Origin: Oculina patagonica
Taxonomy: Eukaryota
Direction: 5' to 3'
Assembly (NCBI RefSeq): GCF_052425735.1
Contig: NC_135758.1
Coordinates: 4,588,001-4,652,000, forward strand
DNA length: 64,000 bases
Below, one piece after another: positions 6,606 to 63,275 of this stretch; within the stretch, counting starts at the first letter, position 1, and each line of letters begins with the position of its first letter. Position numbers and translations under genes: made by a program. The notes under the pieces were generated by a model. That model saw nothing but the letters and a program-made list of their open reading frames with translations, was not told where the DNA came from and did not search any database.

Positions 6606-6690
6606 ACTTACCGTGTTAAGTTTCTTTTATATCTTCTGATTAACAGGAAAACCAAAACTGGAATAACACTGAGGGACTTTCCCTGCAAGA
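6606..6690 (-). promoter_or_regulatory. Gene 1 proximal cassette (type C): GTAAGT donor plus NF-kB site
   Basis: ACTTAC (GTAAGT on the minus strand) at 6606-6611 and canonical GGGACTTTCC at 6673-6682. Homologous to 62600-62680, 34626-34715 and 32133-32215. Confidence 0.6.
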
Positions 6691-7161
6691 CAGCCGTTGC
6701 ACAAAGACAACTTATTAAAACACAACCAACTCTCAACCTTTTAAAAACTTAAAAAGAAGAACATTTCTACTAAAGTGTACATGTGTTACATCCTTTGCCA
6801 TATCATCTCCATTCTTTGTTAAATGTAGACGGGATTGTCCAAAAGCTTTAAAAACAAATATAAGACAATCAAAGACAGAACTCATCTTCCTTGGTTTGTT
6901 GTAATTCTTCATTATAAGTTCAAAACACGAAAGTCGTGAATTTACTATTTTGTTCACTTCATAATGTATTTTGCATGATTTCATCGATCGTCATTCTTCG
7001 TGTGTTTTCACTGTATCAAATAGACGTGAAAAACCAAACAGCTTAAATTAAACCTAGAACCAAACGACCAAGTTTGCGATGGTCCTACGTTTTGAGTTTT
7101 ATGAATGTCGTGACCAGTTAAGATAGAGGCCTTACAATATAGGGTTATTTAGTTGTAATTA

Positions 7162-7465
7162 TGCACCTATCAATGTTAAGCCCGAGGGTGGGGGGGGGGG
7201 GGGGGGGTGGGGCTAACCACGGGAATTTAATCGGGAGGTACGTCCCCAGGGTAGGGATTTTGATCGTACGTGATGGCCCCAGGGTAGGGATTTTCGGGTC
7301 GTATATGAAGGTTTGAAGGACATTTGACTACCTTTCATGGGGATTTTGACCAATTATTTTGTCCCGGGGGTAGGGAATTTGACATTTTTTTATAGAAAAT
7401 GTCAAAATTCCCACCCCCTTGCCCCCCCCCCCCCTCCCCCCTCGGGCTTAACATTGATAGGTGCA
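7162..7465. mobile_element. 304-bp MITE inserted at the donor position of a promoter cassette
   Basis: TIRs TGCACCTATCAATGTTAAGCCCGAGGG / CCCTCGGGCTTAACATTGATAGGTGCA. TTA TSD at 7159-7161 and 7466-7468. Confidence 0.85.
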
Positions 7466-7760
7466 TTACCACGGTAAAGTTCGCCTTGGAAAATGAAACA
7501 ATGAAACATGTTCTCTGAGATGGAGATGGAACACCATAGAAAACTCGGAAGAATGAAATCGATCAAATCATGCAAAATAGATTATGAAGTGAACACAAAA
7601 TTTTATATTTACGGACTTCGTGTTTTGAAATTTTAATGAAGAATTACAACTGACTGAGCACGATCAGTTCTGTCTTTGATGGCCTTTATCGTCTTCAGAC
7701 CAAGTAGGGGACAAAGTAAGTTGTAATTGTACTTCTCGCGACGAAGCTTGCTTTAATTTG

Positions 7761-7808
7761 GAAATTGAAACTACGAAACACTCGGGATAGTTTTCGAAAT
7801 TCCGAGAA
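7761..7808 (-). promoter_or_regulatory. ISRE + GAS cassette (type A) upstream of gene 1
   Basis: GAAATTGAAACT at 7761-7772 and TTCCGAGAA at 7800-7808. A further copy, GAAAATGAAACA, lies at 7489-7500. Confidence 0.55.
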
Positions 7809-8340
7809 AGGATATAATAATCACATTAATTCATACAAGCAACCGTGATTAAAAAGTTTGTAGAGTGTTGCACACAAGCTTGGCGGGATGCGGGATACGA
7901 ATTCTAAACGGCGGGATATGGGATGAAAATACACAAGCTGGAGTAGGATAATACAAGTGCTCAGTTAAAACGGGTTTTAAACAATCGAAATGACCATTTA
8001 ATAGCCACTTTTAGTTGTCTACTGTTTAGTTTGGAAGAGAGTTCCATAATAATGGAGAGGCTAAACTAAACGCTCTGTCACCGTGTGCTTTCATATGATT
8101 TAGCAATCGATTTGGTGACCAAGATCTAAGCTGTCTTGGAGGTCTATAGCAAGCTATTATGTCATTATTTCAAGCTACTGTCCGCTTTATAAAGGGTGTC
8201 CGTTTAATATGGGCTTGACTGTACGCATTCACGTCGCACATGTAAACTACTGATTGCCACAAGACGTCTGACTCTCCCTTTACAAATAGTTTGAAAATAC
8301 ATATCTTTTGTTCAAATGTTAAAAATAACTCATACAATAC

Positions 8341-60987: not shown

Positions 60988-61325
60988 AATAGTAATCTAT
61001 ATGCAGCACTCTCCCTCAAGTTATATGCGGATTAGAATGGGGGTAAGCTGTCGCTTTCAGGTAGGAAAAAAATAAATAGCACTGGGATGAGAGGGCGGGA
61101 GAAAACTAAACCTGAAAGTCGACAGCGAGAAAAGCCGACGGAGATAAAACACTAAAGGATAAATAAAACGCGGTGGACCGAAACGCCAGCCTGGCGCGAA
61201 AAGGAGAATGAATGCACATGTGTGAATCCTTATATAAGCTTTGAGGGAGACCGCTGACAAATAGTAATCTATTTGCAGCACTCTCCCTCAAGCTATATGT
61301 GGATTAGAATGGAGGTTAGCTGTCA
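60988..61325. repeat. About 65-bp direct repeat pair bordering the right TIR of the Sola3-like element
   Basis: AATAGTAATCTAT.TGCAGCACTCTCCCTCAAG.TATATG.GGATTAGAATGG at about 60988 and 61260. Confidence 0.75.
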
Positions 61326-62599
61326 CAACAGCCTAAAAGCAATAATGTAGAAATGAATAACCCCCAAATACCCCAAAACTAAACAAAAACAACCAAAACT
61401 AAACCCCAAACCTTAGAAAAAAAGGTCTAAGCAAACAATAGGAATGACAGAAAGTGGCCTTAATCTGCCATCTCCAAAGCTTGGAAACATAAAATTGATT
61501 ACCCAGCATACTGCATAAGGCCAAGTAACGACAGCAGGGTACAAAACTGTGACAAATACAAATGAAGGAACAACGGAAGGGAAGCAAAACAAATGGGAAA
61601 AATGAAGTAAAGAAAGAAAATAAATAAAGGAAGACTTTGGAGATGACAGCCTTGGCTCCGGTAATCCGAGTAGGGAATTAGACTCCCTCCAAGACTGCCA
61701 TCGGACTTCTAGCAAAGTTTAGAGAAATTTAGCACCGTAGCGCCAAAAAAATCAATTTAACGGTTAAAAACGTGTTTTTGAGTAATATGCAGAAATTACT
61801 CAAAAATTCAGTTCCTACTAAAGTACTAATGACTTTATAATTTTTTTAATTGCTCCATTTTGTGTCCATTCAAACCTCATTTTGTTGAGACATAACACAG
61901 ACAAGCCAGGCCGGACTGATATATGCAGCTATCTTCAATTATTTTAATATGACAGATCAGTGCCAGAACCTTTATGTACCTTGCTCCATAAGCTTGTTGT
62001 TAGTAACGTATGTGTTGTTTCTTTTTTTAGCTCTGTTTGCTTGGACAAAAAAAAAATTCCTAATTTGGGATCTTTTGGCCACAGGTGTGGCCGTTTCATT
62101 TCCTAACAATCGTTGGAAGATCACATTGCAAAAACATACAAAGTATTATCCGCCATTTCCAGCAAAGTTGAGGGAGAAACCCGCCACAGCTCGCACAAGG
62201 AACGAGGGCATTTGTATTTTAGTCAAACGTGTGTCTGAAGTGTGACTGTTATTTCTTGCTCAGCTGTTCTTGAACAGCGTGTGAAACGAAAATAATCGCG
62301 ATTATCTCAGCCTGCTATTAATTAATTTGCGCTCACCAGTGTTGTTAAATCAACAGAATCAAACCAATACGCGTCAACAAGAGAAATTGTTCCAACTATT
62401 TATCGACAAAAGTTGCTACCAGTGAGTGTTCATTCGCGTGACCTTCTCGCGTGACTCACTGTTAGCGTTCACACAACAACGAAAATCAGTCACGCGATTC
62501 ATGCAAATCTCTCGTTGTGAACATTCTTAGTATTTAACATTTGGCTAAACATGCACAGCTATCAGTCACGAACATCTTACGGCTTGAAATAAGATATAT

Positions 62600-62680
62600 A
62601 CTTACCGTGTTCCGTTTCCTTATCTGCTGGCAAAAGTGAAACCAAAAGTGATAAACTGAAATAACACTGAGGGACTTTCC
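62600..62680 (-). promoter_or_regulatory. Gene 3 proximal cassette (type C): donor + IRF-E + NF-kB
   Basis: ACTTAC at 62600-62605, AAAAGTGAAACC at 62632-62643, GGGACTTTCC at 62671-62680. Confidence 0.65.
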
Positions 62681-63197
62681 CTGCAAGACAAGCGTCAGAC
62701 AAAGACAAATACAAATCGAAATCAGTGATAACCAAATTTCAAACACTGCACAAAACAACCAGTCGAAACCAAAGAAATATCGTTTTACTAAAATGTTTTA
62801 TATCCTTCTCTATCTCCATTCTTTGTTAAATAACAGCAGATCAGTTCAGTACTTTCAAAGTTGTTTACATCGTGCTGTCGACTTATTTATCGAATTTACA
62901 TGTCAGCTTCCTGTCATAGAAAGACCGACTTGGTCTGAAGACAAATAAGGCAACTAAAAGAAAAATCTTGCTCTTGACCTTTCTCAGTCTGTTGTAATTC
63001 TTCGTTCTAATTTGAAAACACGAAAGCCTCTTAACTCTCGCATGATTTCGCATTGTTCGGTTTCATTCTTTCCCTTTCCGGCATGGTAAAAATCCAAAGT
63101 TTGCGAGTCGCTTTGTTTTGTAAGCGTCGTGACAACAAAATCGTACTATATATTCTAAACTGGTTAGATAGAGGCCATACGATACAAGCTAAGTTGT

Positions 63198-63275
63198 ACT
63201 TACCACGCGTACGGCGAAGCTTGCTTTGGAAAGTGAAACTACGAAACACTAGGGGGGTTCTCGAAATTCTGAGAA
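63198..63275 (-). promoter_or_regulatory. Gene 3 type A cassette: donor + ISRE + GAS
   Basis: ACTTAC at 63198-63203, GAAAGTGAAACT at 63229-63240, TTCTGAGAA at 63267-63275. Confidence 0.65.

Follow-up and report, generated by a model that had tools for sequence, protein, structure and literature searches.

The 64,000-nucleotide stretch of Oculina patagonica DNA analysed here (the window) carries three TPR-CHAT paralogues in tandem on the minus strand, and in each of them short duplicated non-coding exons are strung 5' of a single coding exon. The explanation that we favor, and hold to be probable, is that these cassettes represent homologous non-coding leader exons, multiplied by tandem duplication and spliced in series from a promoter of cassette type B. 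Transcription would start at type B, which offers IRF-like motifs, a TATA box, an Inr-like site and an exon 1 of 57-71 nt. Splicing would then run through each downstream cassette that retains an AG acceptor and a GT donor (type A, ~50 nt; type C, 71-84 nt; type D, ~59 nt), and the chain would terminate at the single coding exon, with its acceptor ~20 nt before the ATG. The predicted chains are B-C-CDS for gene 1, in which the A and D copies have decayed, B-A-C-A-A-C-CDS for gene 2, any member of which may be skipped, and (?)-A-C-D-CDS for gene 3. The outcome would be an ATG-free 5' UTR differing in length and content among the paralogues.

Three tandem TPR-CHAT genes

The three genes lie within 64 kb and share 82-84% nucleotide identity. 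The gene 2 product matches Pfam TPR_12 in 10 stretches (E 2e-129) and CHAT at residues 964-1235 (E 2e-57), so that it has a TPR array at the N-terminus and one CHAT domain at the C-terminus, which places it in the TPR-CHAT (TTC28-like) family. The C-terminal part is 80-81% identical to O. patagonica TTC28-like proteins, and the length of the TPR region varies between paralogues (proteins of 1243 versus 1480 aa). Exact-sequence look-ups with the proteins of genes 2 and 3 and one O. patagonica isoform returned nothing on record, and a search with the N-terminal 250 aa for transcript-derived fragments from the same species gave no match above 61% identity.

The genes are interleaved with LTR, Pao and TIR elements, so that the tandem array sits in a repeat-rich region. 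With hundreds of copies, the TPR-CHAT family ranks among the most expanded in stony corals, and tandem arrays in repeat-rich, fast-evolving regions are reported for Acropora in PMC12314368. The expansions described there share with the window genes the domain layout, the tandem setting and the retroelement-rich surroundings. A term search of that article returned no mention of UTRs or single-exon genes, and it seems to contain no account of leader-exon arrays or of the conserved promoter cassette. Literature searches likewise found no account of leader arrays of this kind.

Table 1. Coding exons and leader cassettes of the three TPR-CHAT genes, in window coordinates.
Feature	Position	Strand	Remarks
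Gene 1 coding exon, TPR-CHAT	1..1299	-	Open at window start; ATG 1288-1286
Gene 1 D-like leader, decayed	6340..6400	-	Lacks a good donor
Gene 1 type C leader exon, 71 nt	6612..6682	-	Pyrimidine tract + CAG; GTAAGT 6611-6606
Gene 1 type A cassette, decayed	7701..7895	-	Donor reads GAGAAGT; lacks AG acceptor
Gene 1 type B cassette	8289..8651	-	IRF-like motifs; TATAAAA 8443-8437; GTAAGT donor 8358-8353
Extra type A-like cassette, 5' of gene 1 B	10103..10298	-	Donor GTAAAT; lacks acceptor
Gene 2 coding exon	15596..19347	-	CAG acceptor 19350-19348; ATG 19327; stop 15598-15596; 1243 aa
Gene 2 type A cassette, decayed	31585..31807	-	Donor lost; ISRE-like motif interrupted
Gene 2 proximal type C exon, 76 nt	32139..32214	-	CAG acceptor; donor 32138-32133
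Gene 2 type A exon, 54 nt with the upstream GAG as acceptor	33175..33228	-	Donor 33174-33169
Gene 2 type A exon, 48 nt	34284..34331	-	GAG acceptor; donor 34283-34278
Gene 2 distal type C exon, 84 nt	34632..34715	-	CAG acceptor; donor 34631-34626
Gene 2 type A exon	35273..35322	-	GGG instead of AG at usual acceptor; donor 35272-35267
Gene 2 type B cassette	36184..36560	-	TATAAAA 36351-36345; Inr-like TCATTCT ~28 nt downstream; donor 36253-36248
Gene 3 coding exon, TPR-CHAT	45617..50078	-	AAG acceptor; ATG 50059; 1480 aa
Gene 3 type D leader exon, 59 nt	62337..62395	-	TAG acceptor; GTGAGC donor
Gene 3 type C exon, 75 nt	62606..62680	-	CAG acceptor; donor 62605-62600
Gene 3 type A exon, 56 nt	63204..63259	-	GAG acceptor; donor 63203-63198

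Duplicated leader cassettes

An initial annotation of the window had listed ten GTAAGT donors and sorted them into three cassette types. All ten are present at their coordinates on the minus (gene) strand, and they do fall into three homologous cassette families. GTAAGT as such is not enriched, with 33 occurrences in the window against 29.7 +/- 5.5 expected, and we rejected enrichment as a signal; outside the cassettes the motif divides evenly between the strands (12 minus, 11 plus). The recurrence of donors therefore reflects duplication of cassettes and not independent donors. The proposed proximity of an ISRE to the type A donors also holds, the ISRE-like TTTCACTTTCC ending ~18-24 nt before the donor. 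Several elements had been overlooked: a second GTAAGT (33208-33203) within the gene 2 A exon at 33175..33228, the three decayed A copies, a fourth exon type, D, with its decayed copy in gene 1, and a canonical 3' splice site opening every type C unit. Cassette number is unequal among the three paralogues.

The A and C exon intervals of the window contain no ATG in 514 nt, and their flanks contain 24 in 1600 nt. Among the window copies the exons are also better conserved than their surroundings, at 71% for type A versus 57% and 52% in the flanks, and at 63% for type C versus 44% and 53%. The signs that the A and C exons descend from one ancestor are no more than suggestive: aligned locally, the two give p ~0.0005-0.01 in 7/9 pairs, and nhmmer found no cross-match between them.

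Not all copies are intact. The decay at 7701-7895, 10103-10298 and 31585-31807 and in the gene 1 D copy is plainly visible, and the O. patagonica copy of the first of these, in L003, is equally decayed; the A-like cassette at 10103..10298 is a relic or a distal element. Such decay is what one would expect if most cassettes were inert relics of partial gene duplications, with a minimal chain of B-proximal C-CDS or B-CDS and the others lying unused in introns, and the cassette flanks are alignable too, which fits recent duplication. We regard this reading as decidedly improbable, since the exon intervals are the ATG-free and better conserved portion, most copies retain intact AG and GT signals, and leaders of relatives carry up to seven cassette exons; the skipping of A-like cassettes by contig L018 (see below) is a further point in its favor.

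The copies are numerous, the window is dense in retroelements, and one 150-nt flank element is inverted (6862-7009 versus 7686-7539), as might be seen if the cassettes were mobile-element copies (MITE or SINE) with chance splice-like and factor-like motifs. However, across 85 related loci, all of them TPR-CHAT loci, 43/43 matches to the cassette models (A, B and C) are in gene orientation, as are all of the window copies. The copies are found between tandem genes or 5' of a coding exon of the TPR-CHAT family, their A-C-D order is kept between species, and self-comparison revealed no terminal inverted repeats flanking A, B or C. A transposable-element origin was rejected on orientation and position, and we consider it extremely improbable.

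Two conserved blocks of the last intron were tried as additional exons, one at 3400-3760 versus 61795-62150 and one at 2760-2970 versus L003 9465-9675. Both lack exon-like features and contain ATGs, and neither was retained.

A common acceptor before the ATG

Genes 2 and 3 share with dozens of coral loci an acceptor that lies ~20 nt ahead of the ATG. Comparison of intron-less contigs with the genome demonstrates both the 5' UTR intron and its acceptor, with the junction at CAG; contig L028 corresponds to L022 and L025 at 100%, and L018 to L012 at 97-98%. These transcript/genome pairs from relatives confirm that one shared acceptor of the constant exon is used, as had been proposed, and the leaders are indeed non-coding, with one acceptor just 5' of the ATG of a large coding exon.

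The acceptor itself is a different one. As annotated, every coding exon has its T-rich tract and, 11 nt ahead of the ATG, a TAG (1300, 19339, 50071), but the TAG at -12 was rejected as the general acceptor because it lies within the mature mRNA of relatives, whose transcripts use the CAG ~20 nt before the ATG. Only gene 1 would need the TAG, since its customary CAG at -20 is gone and the sole AG is that of the TAG at 1302-1300.

Types C and D as probable internal exons

All four type C units of the window (4/4) open with a pyrimidine tract and CAG and close with GTAAGT, and the O. patagonica copy of type C has the same start and end. Because it begins at a canonical 3' splice site, type C is an internal exon. 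Type D units likewise have a 3' splice site directly at their start. Type C had been interpreted as an NF-kB-driven promoter with a first exon; however, the NF-kB-like decamer GGAAAGTCCC sits at the acceptor and constitutes the first 10 nt of the internal exon. In the C unit with its donor at 32133 this motif is degenerate (GGAAGGTCCT) although the CAG acceptor is retained.

Type B as the probable promoter and type A as its possible converted copy

Among the cassette types, a TATA box with an Inr-like site ~28 nt downstream occurs only in type B, where the pair is conserved in 11 copies from several corals. The whole arrangement of TATA box, Inr-like site, exon of ~60 nt and GT donor is kept both in the window and in O. 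patagonica, as well as in 8 distant coral loci, 0.45-3 kb upstream of the CDS. The IRF-like TTACTTTCC adjoins the TATA box, with more GAAA-repeat motifs upstream, and this too is conserved across corals. Type B is thus likely to be a promoter plus exon 1, judged from these sequence features; the predicted first exons span ~8415-8359 in gene 1, where a uATG is included, and ~36324-36254 in gene 2. Any type B cassette of gene 3 would fall past the window end.

These observations do not agree with the proposal that each cassette has its own promoter and first exon, because only B has the TATA/Inr pair and C and D begin at a 3' splice site. Nor do they support the six or more promoter-plus-leader units proposed for gene 2.

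Type A aligns to type B on either side of an 85-nt gap, which corresponds to the TATA-to-exon segment and is missing from A. By this alignment type A is a homologue of B minus that segment, and it has the appearance of a duplicated B promoter turned into an exon. Three of the four intact type A units in the window have AG where relatives use an acceptor, and AG is also present at the matching position in L030, L012 and L026. The fourth, with its donor at 35267, has an alternative GTAG acceptor that would give a 29-nt exon from 35301.

Conservation across species extends upstream of the A exon over CRE-like, TTCNNNGAA and kB-like motifs and goes beyond what an acceptor requires. Type A, and not C or D, could provide extra TATA-less promoters for IRF-, STAT- or NF-kB-like factors. 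Each would yield a micro first exon of ~30 nt, giving gene 2 several starts besides B, and the downstream cassettes would still be joined serially. The conserved 60-100 nt upstream of the A exon include TGACGTAA, TTCTCGGAA, GGGAAACCCC and AGTTTCACTTTC in distant corals, and TCACTTT, in our own reading of the sequence, matches the Inr consensus. Motifs and donor are kept together in intact copies and both lost in decayed ones, a canonical GAAACTGAAA lies in L012 immediately 5' of the start of contig L018, and contig L067 begins inside an A cassette, 5 nt before its ISRE-like motif, with the following intron retained. We nevertheless consider promoters at type A unlikely. A lacks exactly the TATA/Inr segment found in B, it has the AG acceptors described above, the A unit of contig L010 is internal with a D exon preceding it, and a contig end is not a transcription start site. 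Some promoter activity at type A may persist, given the conserved block of factor-like motifs and the start of L067 within the cassette.

Serial splicing in relatives

Evidence for serial splicing comes from other corals, whose N-termini are at most 61% identical to those of the window genes. The homologous transcript contigs L010, L070, L009 and L038 join 3-7 cassette exons in series; these are assembled contigs, in which 5' ends are not transcription start sites and repeated exons are prone to mis-assembly. The longest leader, in L010, has seven cassette exons in the order D-A-C-D-C-D-E-CDS. Its segments 67-122, 118-193 and 193-259 are collinear with the genomic A, C and D cassettes of L030, with AG...GT borders, and its A unit includes ~20 nt upstream of the ISRE-like motif, which consequently lies inside the exon. 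The L010 UTR has no ATG in 471 nt, versus 8 expected. In L070, and likewise in L009, three homologous exons follow one another. Gene 3 of the window has the A-C-D order of L010 and a similar C-D intron of ~210 nt, so that the order is conserved between species.

Mutually exclusive use of the leaders, as initially proposed, is not supported by these contigs of other corals, in which A, C and D are joined in one transcript; consecutive UTR exons were in fact the finding that the initial annotation had itself named as counting against it. Inclusion of cassettes is not universal, since L018 skips two A-like cassettes within its intron. This skipping, the lack of the usual AG in the A unit with its donor at 35267 and the uATG in the gene 1 B exon count against serial splicing, as do the conserved motifs upstream of the A exon and the start of L067 within an A cassette. 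For O. patagonica we infer the transcription start at B and, likewise, which of the cassettes are included in the leader.

L004 (a Tara metagenome sequence) and L005 (a draft genome sequence) were considered as candidate transcripts, and both proved to be genomic. BLAST of the window upstream regions against L001 and L002 returned just the A core and simple repeats.

Discussion

CYP19A1 (aromatase) and NR3C1 have multiple untranslated alternative first exons that splice to one acceptor just 5' of the ATG, and each of these leaders has its own promoter, lacks an acceptor and is used exclusively. The coral genes resemble them in having non-coding leaders, a common acceptor a few tens of nucleotides before the ATG and an unchanged protein. 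They differ in that C and D have canonical acceptors, the TATA/Inr core is present only in B, and the cassettes of relatives are serial. In the protocadherin and UGT1A loci every variable exon is coding and has its own promoter, and a given transcript carries one of them. The likeness, on which the initial annotation drew, lies in the tandem array of homologous 5' exons upstream of a constant sequence. The coral exons, unlike those, are non-coding, ATG-free micro-exons fitted for consecutive splicing; neither a promoter for each exon nor the absence of acceptors is found, and the protocadherin-like reading is largely ruled out.

With an ordinary multi-exon 5' UTR the arrays share a single promoter, serial uATG-depleted exons and a last intron near the start codon. 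The coral leaders are distinguished from such UTRs by being homologous tandem duplicates, up to seven per transcript in relatives, by a type A that seems to derive from the gene's own promoter, copied and disabled, and by the recurrence of the same cassette families across the gene family in several corals. A serial array of duplicated leaders is unusual, yet it involves no new regulatory principle, and it offers an example of promoter duplicates turning into internal UTR exons. The promoter cassette with IRF-like motifs that is shared across species raises the testable hypothesis that the TPR-CHAT family may be immune-inducible. It is also conceivable, although we give the idea little credence, that the exonised copies of an IRF/NF-kB-type promoter act twice, the DNA binding factors as intragenic enhancers or weak starts and the motifs in the RNA binding a common regulator, such that copy number would tune inducibility or translation across hundreds of stony-coral TPR-CHAT paralogues. 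A variable chain of duplicated ATG-free leaders would also account for the 5' UTR introns of up to 13 kb that gene models of this family require.

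Gene organization and upstream cassettes

GC content across the window is ~0.39, without runs of N, and the three tandem TPR-CHAT (TTC28-like) paralogues in it each have one large coding exon preceded by homologous repeated cassettes. In the gene 2 protein a long TPR array is followed by a C-terminal CHAT domain; the nearest named proteins are O. patagonica TTC28-like products with 80-81% identity across the C-terminal 484 aa, followed by those of Orbicella at ~68-70%. Together with a 93.6% match of non-coding DNA to an O. patagonica locus, these identities place the source among robust-clade scleractinians close to Oculina. 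The TPR-CHAT family is massively expanded in tandem in corals (PMC12314368).

Coding exons, acceptors, cassettes, repeats and mobile elements (window coordinates unless a locus is named)
Feature	Coordinates	Strand	Details
Gene 1 coding exon	ATG 1288, continues past window start	minus	uninterrupted
Gene 2 coding exon	19327-15596	minus	uninterrupted, 1243 aa
Gene 3 coding exon	50059-45617	minus	uninterrupted, 1480 aa
Gene 1 coding-exon acceptor	exon base 1 = 1299	minus	family CAG at -20 gone, now AAAACC; sole remaining candidate TAG at -12
Gene 2 coding-exon acceptor	exon base 1 = 19347	minus	CAG
Gene 3 coding-exon acceptor	exon base 1 = 50078	minus	AAG
Conserved ~20-nt leader	19328-19347; 50060-50078; 1289-1299		GGCTYATAGARGAGGACGNN
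Gene 1 cassettes			gene orientation: B, A (decayed), C, D (decayed), CDS
Gene 2 cassettes			gene orientation: B, A, C, A, A, C, A (decayed), CDS
Gene 3 cassettes			gene orientation: (window end), A, C, D, CDS
Type B TATAAAA box	8443-8437; 36351-36345
uORF in gene 1 B exon	8408-8380		predicted exon 1
Repeat directly upstream of each type C	6860-7044; 31283-31428; 32219-32415; 34926-35077		150-180 nt
Inverted copy of this repeat	7539-7697		gene 1
Block directly upstream of D	6410-6504; 62400-62497; L003:7142-7271		~90 nt
Ty3/gypsy LTR retrotransposon	36674-41058	minus	intact
Its LTRs	36674-36829; 40903-41058
BEL/Pao-type retroelement	20623-26236	plus	broken; Pao peptidase A17, integrase core, DUF1759 gag-like
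Element bounded by inverted repeats	50116-60987		10.9 kb
A exon, transcript L010 67-122	L030 209-264		AG and GT borders
C exon, transcript L010 118-193	L030 1123-1201		AG and GT borders
D exon, transcript L010 193-259	L030 1401-1468		AG and GT borders

The hexamer GTAAGT is not enriched in the window (33 observed versus 29.7 +/- 5.5 expected) and outside the cassettes is balanced between the strands; the donors recur because they are located in duplicated cassettes. Every GTAAGT donor listed in the initial annotation is present on the minus strand, and its inventory is extended here by three decayed A copies, a GTAAGT at 33203, a fourth exon type (D), and a canonical 3' splice site opening each type C unit. 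All four type C copies have a pyrimidine tract, a CAG, an exon of 71-84 nt and GTAAGT, with the NF-kB-like decamer GGAAAGTCCC forming exon nucleotides 1-10 immediately 3' of the CAG. In the copy whose donor is at 32133 the decamer is degraded to GGAAGGTCCT and the acceptor is retained.

In type B, IRF-like GAAA-repeat motifs accompany a TATAAAA box, with an Inr-like TCA ~28 nt 3' of the box, followed by a 57-71 nt exon and a GT donor. Types A and B can be aligned at either end of an 85-nt stretch missing from A, which runs exactly from the TATA box into the B exon and covers most of that exon; with this TATA-to-exon segment gone, type A is a B homologue without the core promoter. An ISRE-like motif, TTTCACTTTCC, lies 18-24 nt 5' of the type A donors. 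The A and C exons can also be aligned with each other in their 5' portions (p ~0.0005-0.01 versus shuffled sequences for 7 of the 9 pairs), a sequence similarity that is suggestive only.

Several further features accompany the cassettes. The predicted gene 1 B exon holds an upstream ATG opening a 9-codon uORF; this ATG is absent from the gene 2 and O. patagonica copies and present in several distant corals. The repeat beside type C may belong to the unit that was duplicated, or may itself be a small mobile element. The block upstream of D, in which an AP-1-like TGAGTCA and two GTCACGCG repeats occur, is the best-conserved non-coding piece among genes 1, 3 and O. patagonica (86-88%) and may be an intronic regulatory element.

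Comparison with other coral loci

The O. patagonica locus L003 has the cassette order B, A, C, D, CDS, as in the window, and its type C is bordered by a CAG acceptor and a GTAAGA donor. Profile searches with A, B and C of 85 fetched coral loci, all of them TPR-CHAT loci, gave 43 matches, every one in gene orientation and placed either 5' of a TPR-CHAT coding exon or in the interval separating tandem genes. An origin of the cassettes from mobile elements is a less likely alternative. In eight distant loci a type B cassette precedes the CDS by 0.45-3 kb with TATA box, Inr-like site, exon and donor all kept, and this conservation is the best available evidence that B comprises a promoter and exon 1.

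The 1.1 kb non-coding B-to-A promoter region of gene 1 (7594-8699) is 93.6% identical to L003:7-1117, fairly evenly (88-98% per 100 bp), whereas the coding exons are only ~86% and the C cassette ~71% identical. The locus looks mosaic, through unequal crossing-over or conversion between paralogues, or else the promoter is constrained far more than the protein.

Splicing of homologous transcripts

Public metagenome and metatranscriptome contigs were scanned with an N-terminal alignment. In genomic contigs, a pyrimidine tract and a CAG lie ~20 nt 5' of the ATG; in the remaining contigs the intron is absent at exactly this point. Two transcript/genome pairs fix the junction (L028 versus L022 and L025, 100%; L018 versus L012, 97-98%), and because it is at the CAG in both, the mRNA retains the TAG at -12. 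The T-rich tract and the TAG 11 nt 5' of each ATG are both real, but the role of acceptor initially assigned to this TAG applies at most to gene 1, where only the TAG is left. Loss of the CAG there (1299-1310) may lead to a shifted acceptor or poor splicing. The conserved leader portion of the coding exon, GGCTYATAGARGAGGACGNN, is found 5' of the ATG in many coral paralogues and species (loci L006-L062) and in mature transcripts, and includes the TAG, out of frame with the ATG.

Cassettes are used serially in related corals, as seen in assembled transcript contigs with N-termini no more than 61% identical. The 471-nt leader of L010 consists of seven cassette exons, D-A-C-D-C-D-E, with the A exon donor spliced onto the first base of the C exon; L070 has three C-like and L009 three D-like exons in series, and L038 has at least four leader exons. 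Segments of L010 map collinearly on genomic contig L030 in the A-C-D order of gene 3, and the C-D intron of ~200 nt is similar in both. Cassette use is not universal, as L018 splices past two A-like cassettes located in its intron. In L009, L010, L038 and L070 the D-type exons repeat TTGTTGACGCGTATT and the C-type exons GGTTTCACTTTT, up to three times per 5' UTR, and these could be RNA binding sites.

Under the strongest rival explanation, type A units would act as TATA-less promoters as well. The region upstream of the A exon is conserved, the 5' end of the partly spliced contig L067 lies in an A cassette, 5 nt before its ISRE-like motif, and in L012 a canonical ISRE immediately precedes the point where L018 starts, with the qualification that contig ends are not equivalent to transcription starts. 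However, A is missing the core promoter, has AG acceptors, and is used as an internal exon in L010.

Leader conservation and a proposed mechanism

No ATG occurs in the 514 nt of predicted A and C exons, compared with 24 in 1600 nt of 100-nt flanks; the flank rate predicts ~7.7, and the chance of zero is ~5e-4 (Poisson estimate). The L010 leader also has none, with eight expected. Such depletion is the signature of sequence kept in the 5' UTR of a translated mRNA. C exons are 63% conserved versus 44% in the upstream and 53% in the downstream flank, and A exons 71% versus 57% and 52%. That the cassettes are inert relics is also a less likely alternative.

The most likely mechanism for each gene is a single promoter with serial splicing of leader exons. 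Transcription would start at one TATA-type promoter in cassette B, and splicing would join a series of short, non-coding, mutually homologous exons to one another and finally to the single coding exon, leaving out cassettes that have lost AG or GT; which cassettes enter the mRNAs of this species is predicted from these signals. Tandem duplication of promoter-leader units would have produced the chains, type A being a disabled promoter copy made into an exon, and the product would be an ATG-free leader specific to each paralogue. The IRF-, STAT- or kB-like motifs may have some role.

The initial annotation likened the cassettes to variable first exons, each with its own promoter. The common acceptor on the constant exon is the sole defining feature shared with such systems, and the analogy fails on own promoter and absence of an acceptor and, in the transcripts of related corals, on exclusive use. 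An ordinary multi-exon 5' UTR is the closest description, but here the leader exons are tandem duplicates, partly promoter-derived, and belong to cassette families common to a large coral gene family; we found no description of such an arrangement in the literature searched.

Mobile elements between the genes

The 10.9 kb element has terminal inverted repeats of ~680 bp (93.8% identical) plus internal inverted repeats, and its three ORFs (255, 344 and 366 aa) have no Pfam match. It makes up most of the 12-kb last leader intron of gene 3, only ~37 nt upstream of the coding-exon acceptor. The BEL/Pao element is antisense within the 12.8-kb last leader intron of gene 2. The Ty3/gypsy element has 156 bp LTRs that are 100% identical, and its single gag-pol ORF runs for 1296 aa without interruption, encoding RT, RNase H and integrase domains. 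It is inserted ~115 bp upstream of the end of the gene 2 B cassette homology; from these features it looks very recent.
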